Shown one piece after another: positions 8,463 through 59,159 of a stretch of DNA of 64,000 bases. Location: positions 2,790,001 to 2,854,000 of the forward strand of contig OZ218954.1 in the NCBI GenBank assembly GCA_965112735.1, given 5' to 3'. The notes under the pieces are model-generated. The model searched no databases and was not told where the DNA came from. It saw only the letters and a program-made list of their open reading frames with translations. The stretch comes from Phaeosaccion multiseriatum (taxonomy: Eukaryota > Protista > Ochrophyta, other classes). The translations under genes and the position numbers were made by a program. Within the stretch, counting starts at the first letter, position 1; the number at the start of each line of letters is the position of its first letter.

Positions 8463-10615
8463 ATGGAAGAGGGACGTACCATGGAGGTTCGTCAACTCCT
8501 GCCTCAATTGGAATGGGGAGCACGTCTCCCTTGCTGTCGGCTCCTGTTGGCGTTGGCTACAAGCTCTCTTCTGATGCCTTTCTCGCTGTGCCTGACCTAT
8601 TCCCTCTAAACCCGCCCCGTACCTCTCTCTAACCACTCTTTTCTCTCTCCCTCACTCGCTGTCTCGATCATTCTCTCCATCTCAAGCAGGAAGAGGAGTC
8701 AGACGAAGAATGGCTTCCTAAGACGACGAGCAACAAAAAGCGGAGTAAGAAGAAGAGGAAAAAGAGCAGCGGAGCCCTACGCAAGATGGTCTGCAGCTCC
8801 GCAAGTCTCCGCCAAAATGCCCTTGAAGTGGTGATCCAGGCCCATCCCCCCCGCTTGGACGACCTCCTCTCCCTGGCCCAATCCTGTCGCGCCCTCAACG
8901 CGTATGTGGGGAAGGAGTACAAGCGAGTCCGCAAGGAAGTCCTCGTGACGAACAAGATAGACCCCATGCTCGCTTGGCTGGCGAGGGTCGGGCTCGGAAG
9001 GAAGGAGGTGTCACTGATGAGCCGTACCTACCTCTTTAGCTCTGCCCGGCTCGTCAAGCACGTGCGGCTCAATGCTGTTGTTGCCTATCTCTTCACGTTC
9101 AAGTGCCAAGTGTGCGACGCTCGGGTTCCCCAGGGCACCAAGAGTGACAGGCTTTACGAATACGGTGTGTACGCCCATCAGACTTGCCTCTTCCAGCAAG
9201 GCGTGGCTGACGACATGTTGTGCAAGACGTATATTGTGGCGCGAGATGAGCAGAGGAAGGACAAGGGTAATAAGGAGGGTGGCAGCATTCATATATCGGA
9301 GTGCCACCTCAATCATGCGCTGCCTGTCGAGGTAAGTAGTGCCAGTCAAAAGCCGCCCAACACTAGTCAGAGGGTAGAATGGCCACACCAAACCCCCACC
9401 CTTACAAACCCCACCCTTCCTACCCCCCTTGTTGTGCCGTTCTCGTACCTCTCAACACACAAGAAACGCCAAGGCAACTCGCGCCGTATGCACACTACCT
9501 ATGACTACTACGTCGCCTGGAACATACCCTACCCTTCCCTTATCGACGAGGAGCTGACCGTCTCTTACTACATTAAGCAGCTTCACCGAGAGAGGGCCGA
9601 GCGCTGCGAGATGATCCGACACGACAAGGAGGTGGGTGGGTGAAAAGTGCCTCTACAGCGGCAAGAAGAGCAAGACGACGGGGGGGGCACTGCTCACTAA
9701 CCATTCAACGCGCCAGTATGGGCTGTAATCCCTTCTTGACTGCGTGCCCCCCCCCCCCCCTGTCGGCGTCGCCCTGCTTCGCCCTTCTTCTCGTCCACCC
9801 TTGCTTGGCCTCTAACGGTTGTTGCTGATTGCTTCGCCCTACTCGGCGACGGAATACCCTCTCACCAGGCTCTCGCTACGAAGTGGGATCGCAAGCAGCG
9901 CCTGCGAGAGACGCTGCGGGAGAGGCAGATAGAGGCAAGGGACAAACGCATGACGCGGCTGCGAGACACGCACCTCACCGAAGCAGAGTACACCTTCCTC
10001 TTTGCTGCGGACATGAAGAGCCGACTCCGAAGCGTACTGGGGGACTGGGACTCGCTCAAGCTTAAGCCTACCACGAAGGTTGGGGACATAAAGGCAGCGC
10101 TACGAGCTCTCAACTCCCCTGTTCGTGCTCTTTCTCCTGCCCGTGCTGCTGCTGCTGCTGGCCCGCCTACTTCGGCTGGTGGTTCGGCTGGTGCGCAGCA
10201 GACTGGTGCTGCTGCTGCTGTGCTTTTTTCTTCGGGCATGCCTTCTTCTCTCCCTGCCGGTGCTGCTGCTGTCCGTGCTGTTGCCCGTGCTGCTGCTGCT
10301 GCTGCTGTGGCTGCTGGTATTGCTGCTGCTGGCCCTTCTTCTCCGGCTGATGGTTCGGCTGGTGCGCAGCAGACTGGTGGTGGTGGTGGTACTGCTGCTG
10401 CGGGCATGCCTTCTTCTCCGGCTGGTGGTTCGGTCGGTGCTGCGGCTGCTGCTGCTGCTGCTGCGGCTGCTGGTATTGCTGCTGCTGGCGGCCCTTCTTC
10501 TCCTGCTGGTGGTTCGGCTGGTGCGCAGCAGACTGGTGGTGGTGGTGCTGCTGCTGCGGGCATGCCTTCTTCTCCGGCTGGTGGTTCGGTTGGTGCAGAT
10601 CCGCTCACTACGTAG
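8463..10615 (+). CDS. Hypothetical protein with F-box-like segment, Cys/His cluster and Ala/Gly repeat tail
   Basis: Exons ~8463-8486, 8690-9331, ~9464-9630, 9870-10615 splice in frame. LDDLLSLAQSCRAL resembles an F-box helix; CQVC...HQTC is a possible Zn site; basic KKRSKKKRKK may be an NLS. Confidence 0.6.
10160..10600 (+). repeat. Three ~165-170 bp tandem units at the 3' end of the ORF
   Basis: Unit core GGTTCGGCTGGTGCGCAGCAGACTGGT...CGGGCATGCCTTCTTCTC recurs at ~10181, ~10352 and ~10511. Confidence 0.85.
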
Positions 10616-11569: not shown

Positions 11570-11836
11570 TGGTGGCCTTGCTGGCGAATTTGTATGCCGA
11601 AGTGCAGCTCTTGTAGCACCGGCACTGGGTCTTGCCGCTGTCCAGCGCGTTGGACGTCCGGCTGCACATGCCGAGCCGTTTGACGTATGAACTCGCGCGT
11701 GTGGCGTATTTACGTTCATACGTCAAATGGCTTGGCATGTGCAGCCGGACGTCCAATGCGCTGGACAGCGGCAAGACCCAGTGCCGGTGCTACAAGAGCT
11801 GCACTTCGGCATACAAATTCGCCAGCAAGGCCACCA
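11570..11836. repeat. Long inverted repeat (123-bp arms, 21-nt loop)
   Basis: 11570-11692 is the reverse complement of 11714-11836 with three substitutions and no indels. Confidence 0.97.
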
Positions 11837-13289: not shown

Positions 13290-15217
13290 GGAGGGAAGGG
13301 AGGGAGGGAGAGAGGGAGGGGAGGGAGGGAGGGAGGGAGGGAGAGAGGGAGTGAGTAGGGTTGTTGGCGATGATGTGCCACACTCACCGAATGATGGTCT
13401 TCTCGCTATATAGGATGGGCAAGGTGGTGGAGCTCTTGACGACGTAACCCGACTTGCCTAGCTGCCGCCTGCCAGCGACGGGTACGGAAGCACAAGTAGT
13501 GTAGTGCCGTTTAGTGTCAGTCGGCGGCAGTTGGATAGATAGAAGGACAGAAGCCACACCGGGAAGGGGGTGGGGGGGGCGCGGCGGCTGAGTAACGACG
13601 CAGCAAGGGTGTACCGCGCCAAGCCGCTACGGAACATAACATAAAAGGCCCCATCTGACTGGTGTGGTGGCAGGTCAGACACGCATTCACGCACACACGC
13701 ACGCACACACGCACGCACACACGCACGCACACACGCACGCACACACGCACGCACACACGCACGCACACCGCAGCAGCCAACTCACTCTATCCAAGACTGA
13801 GGGTACTCCCTGTAGGGCCGGTGCCCTGCCAGCAGGATGCAGCAGTCGCGGATGCGCGTCACCTGCGGGCAGCAGCAGCAGTAACAACGGTAGAGAAGGA
13901 GAAGGAGAAGAAGAAGAAGAAGAAGAAGAAGAAGAAGAAGAAGAAGAAGAAGAAGAAGAAGAAGAAGAAGAAGAAGAAGAAGAAGAAGAAGAAGAAGAAG
14001 AAGAAGAAGAAGGAGGAGGAGGAGGAGGAGGAGGAGGAGGAGGAGGAGGAGGAGGATATTGGCTCAAGTAGGCGACGAGGGGGGGGGACGAGGAGGAGCA
14101 GGTGTTGGGCCCCTGCCGAACCGCGCGCACGCACACACACGCACCTCTGAAATGATCTCATGGATGCCTCCCGGGTGGTCTGGGATAGGTTGTAGGCCGA
14201 TGATGTACAGCCGCCCCCCTGGGGCCAGGTGCCGGCGAATCCTCGTGAATACCTGATCCTGGAAGAAGGGGCTGAAGCCGTCCACCGCCCCGATGAGGTA
14301 GTCGGCGAGAATGGTGTCGAACACCTAAGACGGGAGCCAGCATGGTAGGGTGACTTGAATGGCGAGAGATTCAAGGAGGGGGCTGGAGGGGGCTTCGGGC
14401 ATCACCGAAGAGAGCATGTGGGGTCCCCGTTAGGGCGGGGGGGGGGGCTGCCTCGATGCCTCACGCCTCACCTGTCCCTCTAGAAAGGCCTCGTCGTTCC
14501 AGTTGCCCACCACGATGCTATCCTCCTTACCAGGGGAGAAGCCCAACTAGAGGCGGTATAGAGGCGGTAATAGAGGAAGTAACGCAATGCAAACAGGGTG
14601 AGCAAGCGTCAGAGGGAAGCGAGTGTGCTGCAACTCAGCTCAACTCCTCACCTGCTTCTTCATATTATTCCCAAATGCCTCATCTGCCGTGACGGCGGTC
14701 CACCCCTTGGTGTCCAGCGAATGCACCCATTTGAGGCTGTGTGTGCCCGTGCCTGCGTCCAAAAATCTGCCCCACTCCCTTCCTTCATTCGACTTCTCCA
14801 GGATGCCGAAGAGCTTGTCTGGCACTGGTGCCGAACCTCCTCCCAGCGCTGCAGCCGCGGCGGCCTGGATCCCATTCGCTGCCGACGTCAGAAGCCCCCC
14901 TGTGCCATCACGCGGACAGTTAGTTCGAGAGAGTTGTTTCTTGTCTCTCAACCCCTCCACCTCCTCCGCTTCTCCTCCTACCCCCCTCTTTTGTGTGCCA
15001 CCTCTTTAATACCTGTGTTCGCTCGAAGCGCCGAAGCGTTATCGAGGAGGAGAGACATGCAAAAGAGGAAGAAGAGCATCCAAGTGTGCGGGAACGCTAA
15101 GTGGGTGTCTTCGACATTCAGCGCCGGGTCACAGAAGGCGGGGTCAACGCCGATCTTCCCCCCCATCCCCCCTTCCTCCCATACCCTAAGAGCTCTCACT
15201 CTATGAGCAATTGACAT
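12534..15217 (-). CDS. Class I SAM-dependent methyltransferase-like protein
   Basis: Spliced MSIAHRVRALR|VLKRW...FLDAGTGTHSLKW (motif I)...FDTILADYLIGAVDGFSPFFQ...LAPGGRLYIIGLQP...RDCCILLAGHRPYREYP...RQLDVA...LGFDYVV; stop at 12534. Confidence 0.85.
13905..14055. repeat. (GAA)n(GGA)n intronic microsatellite
   Basis: Directly visible; lies within an intron of the methyltransferase gene. Confidence 0.95.
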
Positions 15218-15306: not shown

Positions 15307-16019
15307 ATGGAGCAGGGAATGGTCTCCTCCATCGACGAGATTGCCTCGCAACTTCGCACGAAGGTTGAAGTGGGGGCCGTGATGGAGACCATGCTCGACG
15401 ACCTCGAGGTGTGGGAGTGGGCGTGCCGGCAGAAGGGCCTGGAGGCTGAGCTCGCGGCCCGCACGGCCGAGGTGGCCGCCCTTCGAGAAGCCGAGGCGCG
15501 CCTACTCGCCAAAGAAGACGCTCTGATACAAGAGACAGCCCAGCAGCGGGACCTGGCCGCGCAGGCAAGGAATGAGCTGGTGAAGGGACTGTGGGGGCTG
15601 TCCAAGGAATTTGAAGTGCGGCTGGCGGAACAGAGGAAGATGGACCAGCTGAGCGTCAAGGTGGGAAGGATGCCCGCTTTGGAGAAGGAGCTGGAGGAGG
15701 TGCAGGCGAAGAACGCCGTGCTGAAGGCCAGGTTGAGTCACGCGGTCGCTGTTAATGCAGGGAGGGCCTCTGCTGGAGGGGGCGGAGCGCAAGCGGGGTC
15801 GTCTTTTTCCAGTGGAGGAGGAACCAAAGCGGGGTCTACCGGCGGAGCGGTGCATGGCATAAGGTCAGTGGGGGCTGCTGAAGACACTGGTAAAGCGTGG
15901 CATCGGTGGTACATTGTACAGTGCTGGGGGCGTTGACGGAGACAGTCTAGTGAAATCGAAGCCCCCCCAACTGCAGACGCCCTCTCTCTCGTGCTAAACG
16001 CGACGTGTGCGCTTTCTCT

Positions 16020-16066
<47 letters not shown>

Positions 16067-19000
16067 TTCTTCTTCTTCTTCTTCTTCTTCTTCTTCTTCT
16101 TCTTCTTCTTCTTCTTCTTCTTCTTCCTCCTCCTCCTCCTCCTCCTCCTCTCTCCTCCTGGTCCTCCTTCTTGCCCACCAATGCCGTCTTCGGGGTACGT
16201 TGCCAATGGCTGATTCCAGCTCCAATGCATCCGACGTGACGTTGCCAATGGCTGAGTACAGCTTCACTGCCTCCGACTTGAACAACAGCCCTGGTGCGCG
16301 AGCTCCATCCCTCGTGCCCTCTTCCGCGGCCATCACCACTGCCATACCACCGGCCTCTCCCCAACCAGTTGGTGGTACAGCAGCAGCAGCCGCCGCCAGA
16401 CCGCGGCTGAGGAGGAGGAGACCCGGCCAATCGACGTGCCTGCTACTCCGACCATCGGATGCCACTCTCTTGCGTATCTACAGCTACCTCGACGGTGAGG
16501 CAGTGCTGAACACAGCCTACCTCTGCACAGCCCTCTACAGAAAGGTCAACGCGCTCTTCGGCGTGGGGGGGCAGTCGGCACTACTCGAGGAGAGCGAAGA
16601 GGAGGGTGGTGAGGGTGAGGGTGAGGGTGAGGAGGGGCGAGAGTACTTTGGCGGCGAAGGAGGAAGAGGAGGAGGAGGAGGAGGAGGGGAGGCAGGGGTG
16701 GGATCGGTAACGACGTTGGGGTCTGGCCCTACGGAGGCGGCAGCAGCAGTTGGTGATACAGCAGCACAAGTAGACGGGGTAGGAGTGCTAGGCCCTTCGG
16801 ATGTGCAACTCGCAGCCCCAGCAACGATAGGAGCGGTGGGAGAGCAGGTGGGGGCGGTTATGGGGCCCCTTCCTACTGCTGCTGTACCACCAACTGCTGC
16901 TGCTACTACGGCTGTTACTGATGCTGCTGCTCCCTTGGGACTTGGACAGGGGCGTGGAGCTCAGCGGGTGAAGAACGCACAGCAGCTGATGGGGGCGCTC
17001 TTTACCACTGTAAGCTCTGCCGTGGTGAGGAAAGGAGAAGAGCTCGGTGCACAGGGCTACGGTGCGGGGCCAGGAGGTGGAGGTGCAACAGCAGCAGTAG
17101 CAGCAGCAGTAGCAGCAGGGGGAGGAGGAGGAGGAGGAGGAGGAGGAGGAGCGGGAGGAGCAGGCGGGGACGGGGCAGCAGCAGCAGCAGGAGGAGGAGG
17201 AGGAGGAGCAAGTGGCGGCAGCAGCGGCAGCAGCAGCGGCGGCATGTCTGCGGAGGCCCAGCTGATTGACTCCATCTCGAAGAAGCTTGCCCTTGGGGAG
17301 ATGAAGGGTATCGTTAACCTCATGGACAAGTCAAAGCGTATGGAGGCGGTGGCCAATCAGGTATGGGCAAAGGGGGGGAGAGAGAGGGAGGGAAGGAAGG
17401 AGGGAGCAATAGAGGGAGGGAGGGAAGGAGGGAGAGAGGGAGGGAGATAGAGAAATGGAGAGGGAGAGAGAGAAAGGGGCCTTCTGGAAGTCACGTTGAA
17501 AGTTCCTCTCACCACTCCATAACCGTGGATGATATGCCAAAATGCCCGTGTTGTGTCAAAATGCTGTTTCCTCCCTCTCGTGGGGATGGTGGTACTCCAC
17601 ACGGCGGATCACAGATGAGATCCGAGAAGGAGGACTTGGCTGCCCGGCTGCATGGAATTGAGAGCGTGAAGGAGGTACTGCTGCAGAAGCTGAAGGAGAC
17701 CGAGGAGGCGTTGAAGAGGAGCATGGAAGAGAAGGGAGCCAGGTTAGACACAACGGGGGGTGGGGGGGGAGGGAGGGAGGGAGGGAAGGAAGGAGAGGGG
17801 AGGGAGGGGAATGGAGGGGGGAAGGGAGGGAGGGGGCTCCAGGGCTTTTGATGAGCGCATGCGATCCATGAAGGGGAGAGAGGTCTGGTGCCTCTCTTAT
17901 TCCCTTCCATTCCCCTGCTCCCGGTGCTCCTCTGACTGGATCAATCCGCCTTGCCCTGCCCCGCTCCTCCCAACCCTCCCCCCCCCCCCTCCTGTATTCA
18001 GTGACCGTCAGAACATGAACGACCTTGAAGTGATCACCTTCCTTGATGGGCGGGCGCAAGGGATGGAGCGTGCTGCCAAAGAGGCCATGGATAAGAGCGT
18101 CTCTACGCAGAAGGTCTTGGAGGAGGAGCGGGGGGCGAGGTGAGGCACAGCGATGATGATGACGACGACGACGACGACGACGACGAGGAGGAGGAGGAGG
18201 AGGAGGAGGAGGAGGAGGAGGAGGAGGAAGAGAGGGGGAGGAGGAGGAGGAGCAGGAGGGTGAGGAGCGCTTTCTGTGTGATGGGTGCTCCCGCTCTCTC
18301 TCCCATCTTTCTCTCTCTCCCTCTCCCTCTCACTCTCACCCCCCCTCTCTCTTCTCTCCCTCTCTCCCTCCCGCTTCTGTCTCTCTCCCTCTCCCTCTCC
18401 CCCTGTTTTTCTCTCCTGGCTGCGGCTCTCTCTCCCCCTCCCTCCCTTTCTCTCTCTCCCTCTCTCCGTCCCTCTCCCTCTCCTTGTCTCTTTCTCAGCT
18501 CCACTCGCATAACAATGGTGGAGGACATGCTTCGCTTGGAGCAGCAGCGGCTCAGAGACGCAGAGACGCAATTCAAGAAGGAAAAGAAGGTGCGAGGGAG
18601 ATGATGATGATGATGATGATGGTGGTGATGGTATAACAATGATGACGACGATGATGATGATGATGGTGATGAGAATGATGAGGAGAAGGAGAATGGTGAT
18701 GAGCTGCATGGAAAGAGCGTGATGCAATGCGAATGTGATAATGCTCTGTGGACTGGCTTCCTTCCCCCCCTCCCTCCCTTCCTCCCTCCCTCTCTCCCTC
18801 CCTCTCTCCCTCCCAACCTTCCTCTCCCTCCCTCTCTCCCTCCGTCTCTCACTCCGTCTCTCCCTCCCCCCCTCTCCTCCCTCCCCCCCCTCCCCCGCTT
18901 CCCCCCCTCCCTCCCTCCCCCCCCTTCCACGTCCTCGGTCCTACCCCGCCCCTTCAACCTTGAACAGGTGCTAATACAAGAGGTGAGGAAGCTTCGCATC

Positions 19001-37062: not shown

Positions 37063-37170
37063 TCGGCCCCTGACATGCTTCTGAGACAGGCCAGCCCAGA
37101 AGCAGGAAGCAGGCCGGCTGGCGCCGCCCAGAAGCAGGGACTCAGAAGCATCATGTCAGGCAGGGGCCGA
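37063..37170. mobile_element. Non-autonomous TIR element (TCGGCCCCTGACA family), copy A
   Basis: Left end TCGGCCCCTGACATGCTTCTGAG; right end CTCAGAAGCAT..GTCAGG..GGCCGA; flanks ATATTA / ATGTTA (5 of 6 match). Confidence 0.75.
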
Positions 37171-53845: not shown

Positions 53846-54315
53846 GCACTTTTTTTAAACCATTTGTGAGCCCCTCACTGAGCCTCACTGAGCCTCCAAC
53901 CTGATGAGTTCTCATTCCTTTTGTGGATCCCTCCGGACCTATACTACCACGTGGTACGACAGCGCAGTAGTTCTCAGTTCAAAGGATCCTCCGGAGCCAT
54001 CTATGCTTTCAAGCCCATATGCACACCCATCCCATCCCATCCTTCGTGCTTCGCTGAAGGTGGTGACATGGCTGGTCGGCGGTAGTGGGGGGGGGGGTGC
54101 TCACAGGCTGGCGGCGTTCCATTTATTTAGACTACTACAATACCTCAAGAATAGACTGATTTAGACACGTACGTGGACTGTCACGATGAATGTTAATGTT
54201 ACTCTCCAAGGGGGGCAGTGCAAGGGATTCAACCCTTGCTTGATCCACAACGAGGTCCACAAGCACCAGCCCACCCTCCCCTGCGAGGCTGCTGGAAGAG
54301 GCGGAGGATTTGTAG

Positions 54316-54480
54316 TCGGCCCCTGACAAGGTTCAAGGTTCTGAGGCGACCCAGGAGGTTCCAGGCTCTGGGGGAAAGCCATGTAGTAAGGCAATGATGA
54401 GGGCCAAGGCTGCTCTGCCAAGCCTCGCCAGCGGGCCAGGTTCCAGGTTCTTCTTGCCTCAGAACCTTGTCAGGAGCCGA
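54316..54480. mobile_element. Non-autonomous TIR element (TCGGCCCCTGACA family), copy B
   Basis: TTGTAG|TCGGCCCCTGACAAGGTT..CTGAGGC ... GCCTCAGAACCTTGTCAGGAGCCGA|TTGTAG, a perfect 6-bp direct repeat on both flanks. Confidence 0.85.
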
Positions 54481-54801
54481 TTGTAGTGTTTGATTTTCAT
54501 TGATATATTACACCCTTTAAGTATTCGGCCGATAGTGTTTGAAAAGGAGTGTGATGGTGCTCCAGTGCCAGGAACCACATGGAGATGGTGGTTTTGGATT
54601 GAGGGATCCGTGGCGCTTCAGCGGGCCCGACACGAACGATCGATTCGACACAGGATCCTGGCTGGTATCAACTTTGTCCCGATGGGGAGGATGACGAGTC
54701 GGAGGGATACGACCTCGAGGGCTAAGTTCCCCGGGGCGGTGAGGCGTTACTTTTAGACAACCGTAGATGGCACTTAAAGGGTGTATTATAATGGATCCCG
54801 C

Positions 54802-58372: not shown

Positions 58373-58512
58373 GATTGTAAATATACCACAGTGGGGCGGG
58401 GCGGTGGGTGTTGTTGCTGACCATACATTCTATATTCGGCTTCAGTTTGGAGCGCAGTCGAAGAGAACCGGTACGGTAGTTCACAACCGAGTCTGTAAGG
58501 AGTGTAGACCGA

Positions 58513-58799
58513 TCGGCCCTGGAAGAGGTTATCAGATTACTGATTACGGCCGGCGCAGCCGGCCTGATTACTGATTACTGCCGGCGCCAGCCGGCCTGAT
58601 TACTGATTAAGGCGCCAGCCGGGCCTGATTACTGATTATGGCCGGCGTCAGCCGGGTCTGATTACTGATTATGACCGGCGCCAGCCGGCCTGATTACTGA
58701 TTATGACGGGCGCTAGCCGGCCTGATTACTGATTATTGGCGCCAGCCGGCCTGATTACTGATTATGACTGGCGCACACTGTAACCTCTTCCAGGGCCGA
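58513..58799. mobile_element. TIR element with perfect 19-bp TIRs, 6-bp TSD and an internal 8x ~31-bp array
   Basis: GACCGA|TCGGCCCTGGAAGAGGTTA ... TAACCTCTTCCAGGGCCGA|GACCGA; GATTACTGATTA occurs 8 times inside. Confidence 0.88.
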
Positions 58800-58869
58800 G
58801 ACCGAGGAGACCGCCAAGGCGCCCAAGAAAATATAAACTACTCGTAGAATGAGCCGAGACACAGCATAA

Positions 58870-58936
58870 TCGGCCCCTGACATGGTCTTGAGACAGGCCA
58901 GCCCAGAACCAGGAACCAGGGTCCTCAGAACCATGT
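58870..58936. mobile_element. TCGGCCCCTGACA family copy C (right TIR truncated)
   Basis: TCGGCCCCTGACATGGTCTTGAGACAGGCCAGCCCAGAA is near-identical to copy A; similarity ends at CTCAGAACCATGT. Confidence 0.7.
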
Positions 58937-59159
58937 TCAACCCCTGATACACTATCCGCTATCCGCTATCGCCGGCGCCAGAAGCTAGCGTATCACCAAC
59001 ACGTGCACTTTGAGATGTATCAAGTCTCAAATCGTCAAACCCCTGTCTTTGGCGAACCAAGCAGCTGTAGGCCACGTGCAGTCTTTATCGAGATAGAGCA
59101 GACGTGGGAAGTCTCAGCACCGCCCAGGTAGGGGCTGTTCAGGAGAAGGAGGAAGAGGA

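Follow-up and report, generated by a model that had tools for sequence, protein, structure and literature searches.

Several described transposon groups resemble the element reported here in one respect or another. Members of the hAT superfamily make 8-bp target duplications and have YARNG-type ends. Internal or subterminal repeats that are bound by the transposase occur in Ac/Ds (hexamers) and En/Spm (12-bp motifs). In the P superfamily, the duplications measure 7-8 bp and the transposase combines a THAP domain with a DDE core carrying a D(2)H motif; this transposase binds internal sites adjoining the ends, not the ends themselves. Polinton/Maverick is a large self-synthesising element with an integrase and a polymerase. 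Polinton generates 6-bp duplications, as does IS3EU/GingerRoot, the ends of which read TA..TA or, occasionally, TG..CA (PMC10045372). Galileo, belonging to the P superfamily, produces mostly 7-bp duplications and a few of 8 bp (PMC4168063). Dada makes duplications of 6-7 bp, has short sub-terminal inverted repeats instead of TIRs, and inserts in U6, U1 or tRNA genes (PMC3706591). An earlier note on this DNA, based on the sequence alone, had named IS3EU and some hAT elements as the superfamilies with 6-bp duplications; this list was incomplete, as both Dada (6-7 bp) and Polinton (6 bp) were missing from it. No described MITE or superfamily combining TCG ends, a 6-7-bp duplication and a repeated module was found in the literature.

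The element was located in a window of 64,000 nucleotides of the Phaeosaccion multiseriatum genome (GCA_965112735.1, contig OZ218954.1, positions 2,790,001 to 2,854,000, forward strand; Table 1). It spans 287 bp (58513-58799); its 19-bp inverted ends match perfectly, and the target duplication on either side is the 6-bp GACCGA. The coordinates and sequence given in the earlier note could be read in the window exactly as described. For the end sequence, TCGGCCCTGGAAGAGGTTA, 0.03 chance matches are expected in the window. The interior of the element consists of the array and has no coding capacity. Each array unit joins TGATTAC-TGATTA to a GC-rich core that is nearly palindromic and includes GGCGCC; the last unit is incomplete. 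The 12-mer GATTACTGATTA occurs eight times at a spacing of 29-33 bp and nowhere else in the window (0.03 occurrences expected), in line with the eight units of about 29-33 bp that had been claimed. All eight units have the same orientation, head-to-tail, and are not mirrored at the two ends. The strand folds far better than shuffled sequences (z = -7.3), which is a trivial consequence of the inverted ends and the palindromic cores, and no Rfam match was found near the window copy.

Table 1. Positions of the 287-bp element, its relatives in the window, and multi-copy loci elsewhere in the genome (C, contig).
Feature	Position	Strand	Basis or remark
Left target-site duplication GACCGA	58507..58512	.	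read directly; identical to 58800-58805
Left TIR, 19 bp, TCGGCCCTGGAAGAGGTTA	58513..58531	+	exact match; partner on minus strand
Internal array, eight head-to-tail units, 29-33 bp each	58532..58780	+	unit alignment
Right TIR, 19 bp, exact reverse complement of left TIR	58781..58799	-	exact match
Right target-site duplication GACCGA	58800..58805	.	read directly
Sister MITE, 165 bp, ends TCGGCCCCTGACAAGGTTC...	54316..54480	+	exact 6-bp duplication TTGTAG at 54310-54315 and 54481-54486
Sister MITE, 108 bp, ends TCGGCCCCTGACATGCTTCTGAG	37063..37170	+	internal CAGAAGCAGG repeats; duplication ATATTA/ATGTTA, 5/6 match
Truncated sister MITE, end TCGGCCCCTGACATGG, CAGAACC-type internal motif	58870..58935	+	70 bp downstream of the 287-bp element, small nest
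Third sister-family fragment: CCCCTGATACAC, then CTATCCG repeats, then GCCGGCGCCAG core	58936..58990	+	abuts truncated copy
PHD hits	C3:609152, C3:503395, C4:4900206, C8:349475, C8:3455209, C13:327704, C16:2004275		seven loci; Pfam PHD search
9.8-kb element copies (L041-L048)	C3:5123170-5132995, C12:2183230-2193050, C13:2272399-2282217, C1:6834421-6844238		

Other repeats were present in the window as well. A 123-nt inverted repeat, 98% complementary and with a 21-nt spacer (11570-11836), forms a coding-like fold-back that is not obviously MITE-related. A tandem repeat of 156-159 bp (10150-10596; 2-2.8 copies, 85-93% matches) lies in a CTG-rich, coding-like stretch. Furthermore, (AGA)n/(AGG)n at 13874-14054 and (TCT)n/(TCC)n at 16012-16171 make up an inverted pair of about 150 nt, 2 kb apart; these are simple repeats, probably without significance.

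The genome searched for further copies comprises 67.1 Mb in 22 contigs, is rich in microsatellites and has a G+C content of about 58%. In a DNA search, 402 candidates came up, of which 46 were scored as matches, with identities of 82-100%. The 19-mer end pattern, with at most two mismatches, matched 164 times (85 forward and 79 reverse), versus none for the reversed control, and GATTACTGATTA matched 1,031 times (562 and 469), versus three for the control. Roughly 300 GATTACTGATTA loci are obtained by extrapolation from the approximately 29 loci in the first 100 matches, which indicates that many degraded copies exist beside about 80 copies with intact ends; among these first 100 matches listed, the clusters hold at most eight GATTACTGATTA motifs. 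When metagenomes were scanned for the 19-mer, three single matches came up, which lacked the array motif and are consistent with chance.

As the earlier note had proposed, the flanks of copies found through their TIRs were tabulated, namely of 32 copies with paired ends from 30 loci. Of these 32 copies, 24 were flanked by exact 6-bp duplications, unrelated to one another in sequence, and three by exact 7-bp duplications (L013, L027 and L030); another two had a 6-bp duplication with one mismatch (L011 and L022); the three copies with no duplication were nested or rearranged pairs. At a single copy, a 6-bp match by chance has a probability of 1/4096. The duplicated target sequences were diverse and showed no consensus. 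Moreover, one copy (L017) is situated inside a MITE of the TAGGCC family, between two copies of TCTCTA, and a related TAGGCC-family host MITE in L031 is uninterrupted at this point, with ACTCTA present only once (positions 1665-1670), representing a paralogous empty site. This comparison provides one related empty site, at which the insertion is precise. Perfect TIRs, which are conserved in most of the copies listed, a duplication of fixed length that is specific to each locus, and a small size coupled to a high copy number and the absence of coding capacity were all found, and these are three marks of a MITE. Precise insertion has taken place at many unrelated sites and did so recently, the whole element travelling with its array included. 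The description of the element as recently active and non-autonomous was borne out by its many scattered copies of nearly identical sequence, their 6-bp duplications, the paralogous site that is empty and the lack of coding capacity.

The mean pairwise distance among 28 full-length copies was 1.7%, and four copies (L003-L006) were identical to the consensus, which points to recent activity. A subfamily of 11-12 copies is set apart by four linked changes close beside the right end. Other variants carry one and the same change in both ends. This is the case for GACAAGG (L029 and L008) and for GACAAGATTA, which is found in older copies in L025 and L031; these older copies have the GATTA motif itself in the inner portion of the end. 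Such subfamilies with the same change in both ends indicate that the ends are functional. An A at position 4 of the end (TCGACCCTGGA) was found in 310 matches genome-wide, versus 16 for the control, many of them beside GATTAC clusters. Dense clusters of TCGACCCTGGA ends, with four to seven ends per 2-8 kb, occurred at C1:6209978-6217980, C4:155766-161615, C3:1259566-1266232 and C2:2158534-2160222, and are either MITE nests or segmental duplications. At C1:2291018 and C1:2295489, 4.5 kb apart, the GATTAC motifs have the same spacing pattern, suggesting a local duplication.

The element has relatives in the window and in the genome. The two complete sister MITEs in the window, of 165 bp and 108 bp, both have TCGGCCCC ends. 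Three smaller window elements had been credited with a TCGGCCC terminus and a 6-bp duplication; this held for the 165-bp element, with an exact TTGTAG, and for the 108-bp element with a 5/6 match, but the duplication of the copy at 58870 is unreadable, as this copy is cut short and passes directly into a fragment from another family. The shared GC core (GGCGCCAGCCGGCC) is present once in the 108-bp element, on the minus strand at 37112-37125, where a reversed core had indeed been noticed before. The architecture of the fragment at 58936-58990 was also seen in L032 and L011. Genome-wide, TCGACCCCTGA gave 791 matches (control, 12) and TCGGCCCCTGA 361 matches (control, 15). Among the matches listed, most of these ends form plus/minus pairs 100-400 bp apart, and within 1.5 kb of GATTAC-array copies they are some 6.5 times more frequent than expected (10 versus 1.55). 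Two array copies lie inside sister MITEs (L016 and L017). The families with TCGRCCC ends pile up in nests.

The array unit is not confined to the flagged family. Tandem Repeats with a period of 31-32 bp and the same GGCGCC core, yet with other 7-mers, were retrieved by TRF from L005 (GATAGCA doublet) and L025 (GAAGCAG doublet), and locus L027 displays the same layout with GAACCTG as the 7-mer. In each family, the 7-mer is also present in the inner part of the inverted end, just inside the conserved end of about 14-15 nt. A module of about 32 bp, composed of a family-specific 7-mer doublet and a shared GGCGCC core, is common to the sister MITE families whose ends read TCGRCCC(C)TG. The architecture of the group comprises the conserved end, followed by the family-specific 7-mer and then by modules of the 7-mer doublet plus constant core. 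The recurrence of the module in sister families makes the flagged element the extreme, eight-copy case of a group-wide architecture. Like MITEs in general, and like those with transposase-bound inner repeats as in Ac/Ds and En/Spm, the element is short, non-coding and high-copy, with perfect inverted ends, a duplication of fixed length, young and nearly identical copies, and internal motifs that are echoed in the ends. It differs from them by its TCG ends and by its 6-bp duplication (7 bp in about one in ten copies). In addition, its whole interior is taken up by composite 32-bp modules repeated in a single direction, instead of mirrored subterminal clusters.

Taken as a whole, the element is very probably a genuine MITE of a group that shares the TCGRCCC(C)TG end and a target duplication of 6 bp, occasionally 7 bp, and that is mobilised in trans, the modules being putative docking sites. 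Its mobilisation would involve a DDE-type transposase that acts in trans and makes target cuts staggered by 6 nt. Cleavage and recognition would take place at the outermost 14-15 nt or so of the end, which are conserved across the families. The inner module of about 32 bp (the family 7-mer twice and the GGCGCC near-palindrome) may serve as a docking site for the DNA-binding part of the transposase or for a host factor. The flagged element itself would have arisen through multiplication of this module to eight copies.

As to the mobilising enzyme, a long copy with the same ends, which the earlier note had advised to look for, was not encountered: ten lone ends (L031-L040, with 10 kb adjoining) all turned out to be truncated MITEs. 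A lone TCGGCCCCTGA at L034:6922 was discarded as a chance match in unique low-complexity sequence. Likewise, two TCGACCCAT ends in the window that seemed to form a pair of 8,350 bp (33770/42119) were attributed to chance, as they lack a duplication and the right one falls within low-complexity GGAGGA sequence. Plus/minus pairs of TCGRCCCCTGA were noted at C1:4724852-4726916 (2.07 kb, enclosing two single GATTACTGATTA motifs and one TCGACCCTGGA end), C3:4158898-4167121 (8.22 kb) and C1:5143846-5149899 (6.06 kb); these are perhaps larger relatives, or else lone ends paired by chance. Hits for Peptidase_C48 were followed as a lead to the driver as well and rejected, the eight 10-kb stretches concerned representing an unrelated 9.8-kb element of a different family. 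This 9.8-kb element, with at least four copies that are 99.6-99.7% identical, has inverted ends of about 70 bp starting with CATTTAGGTA, exact 7-bp duplications (GGGGGGC and TTCTTCT) and a gene for Peptidase_C48, while Pfam gave no match for ten of the larger open frames in it.

A candidate driver came from a Pfam PHD search of the genome, which gave seven hits with an identical score of 50.4 bits, five of them in open frames of 485 amino acids (contigs 3, 4, 8, 13 and 16). Seven hits of equal score look like the pattern of a young multi-copy element, and the PHD-bearing multi-copy gene may encode the transposase of this candidate driver. It is about an even call whether the driver is indeed such a PHD-finger-bearing multi-copy element related to P, the MITE then being a member of an undescribed P-related lineage. 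Apart from the young multi-copy pattern of the PHD hits, a main duplication length with an occasional extra base pair argues for this possibility, as it is known from the P superfamily (Galileo has mostly 7 bp and a few of 8 bp; PMC4168063). The element shares this feature with the P superfamily, to which the P element, Galileo, 1360 and the BuT5 MITE belong, and resembles some Galileo copies, the ends of which can carry internal tandem repeats. Its duplications are, however, mostly 6 bp, with 7 bp in three of 32 copies, instead of 7-8 bp. Furthermore, the P-element-type Pfam families PF21787 and PF21789 had no match in the genome, although the control was equally silent. A search for NHL (PF01436) gave a few weak hits, none of them at the PHD loci. 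Three of the four end patterns (TCGGCCCTGGA-type, TCGACCCTGGA and TCGGCCCCTGA) were searched near the two PHD loci of contig 3 and none was found, so that the end shared with the candidate driver would be at most about 7-8 nt long, unless it is of the TCGACCCCTGA kind. A P-related driver would also imply that one transposase family serves at least four or five different 7-mer families. More tentatively, and with chances somewhat below even, the TCGRCCC-ended MITE families with 6-7-bp duplications may all be non-autonomous members of an undescribed P-related lineage, in which the 32-bp module, with its exchangeable 7-mer doublet and constant GGCGCC core, would act as a two-part docking site whose variable half repeatedly changed specificity.

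A different explanation concerns the array only, which could be a neutral minisatellite that arose by slippage or unequal exchange in a master copy and hitch-hikes without a role in transposition. The uniform head-to-tail direction of the units fits plain tandem amplification. Also, the number of units varies among copies, as expected for unequal exchange: TRF found mostly eight units in the fetched copies and five to seven in variants, end-paired copies ranging from 143 to 294 bp in the end-pattern search. In the shorter copies, with seven, six or five units, both ends and duplications are nonetheless intact. Diagnostic variants are retained across copies by each of the eight units, which indicates that the array is carried along with the element and is not built after insertion. 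Across units, T plus GATTACTGATTA was invariant in all eight, the 12-mer showing no difference over 96 positions, whereas the adjoining GC-rich remainder varied by many substitutions and by indels (unit alignment). Among copies, no excess constraint on the 12-mer was seen, which agrees with neutrality. Singleton mutations were equally frequent in the motif (10 of 96 sites) and the core (17 of 153 sites), this comparison being a test of little power, since equal rates are expected for inert copies; constraint on the 12-mer as judged from copy variation was rejected. The higher per-cell variation of the core was traced to the four linked subfamily changes. A purely neutral array is nevertheless unlikely, if not very much so, as the invariance of the 12-mer across units stands against it, together with the recurrence of the layout of about 32 bp (7-mer doublet and GGCGCC core) in independent families with different 7-mers and the echo of the 7-mer in the inverted end of each family. 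That the array represents iterated binding sites for the transposase or a host factor, as the invariance of the 12-mer and the recurrence of the module suggest, is plausible but unproven.

A derivation from a known superfamily with duplications of about 6 bp, i.e. Dada, IS3EU/GingerRoot or Polinton, is improbable. The duplication length as such fits Dada (6-7 bp; PMC3706591) as well as IS3EU/GingerRoot and Polinton (6 bp; PMC10045372). However, the perfect 19-bp TIRs distinguish the element from Dada, as do its diverse duplicated sequences and its lack of target preference, no tRNA having been found within 1.5 kb of 26 copies. In the case of IS3EU/GingerRoot, the element ends in TC..GA, not in TA..TA or TG..CA, and has occasional 7-bp duplications, for which there is no report in IS3EU/GingerRoot. 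Nothing beyond duplication length links it to Polinton/Maverick. It differs from hAT too, as its duplication measures 6 bp and its ends begin with TCGG. In the comparisons made, the end sequence and the length of the duplication fail IS3EU/GingerRoot, Dada and hAT, and fall just below the range of P. A possibly unclassified superfamily, as suggested in the earlier note, is plausible. Finally, the idea that the locus is no transposon at all, being a local satellite or structural repeat flanked by chance inverted repeats, has nothing to its credit except the tandem array itself and can safely be dismissed, refuted as it is by copies spread over at least 15 contigs in both orientations, by the 6-bp duplication that each copy has of its own and by the empty paralogous site.

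On its own, the element is one more MITE family; its value lies in the evidence for a transposon group that fits none of the superfamilies checked. This group accounts for at least 1,600 matching end sequences in the 67-Mb genome, and the flagged element is the clearest example of the modular inner structure that its families share. Judging from the very young copies, activity of the system may be continuing. The families would supply ready-made variants to test how a transposase recognises its own DNA, provided that the module is a docking site. If the families indeed belong to one P-related lineage with a docking site of changing specificity, they would form a natural series for the evolution of transposase-DNA recognition.
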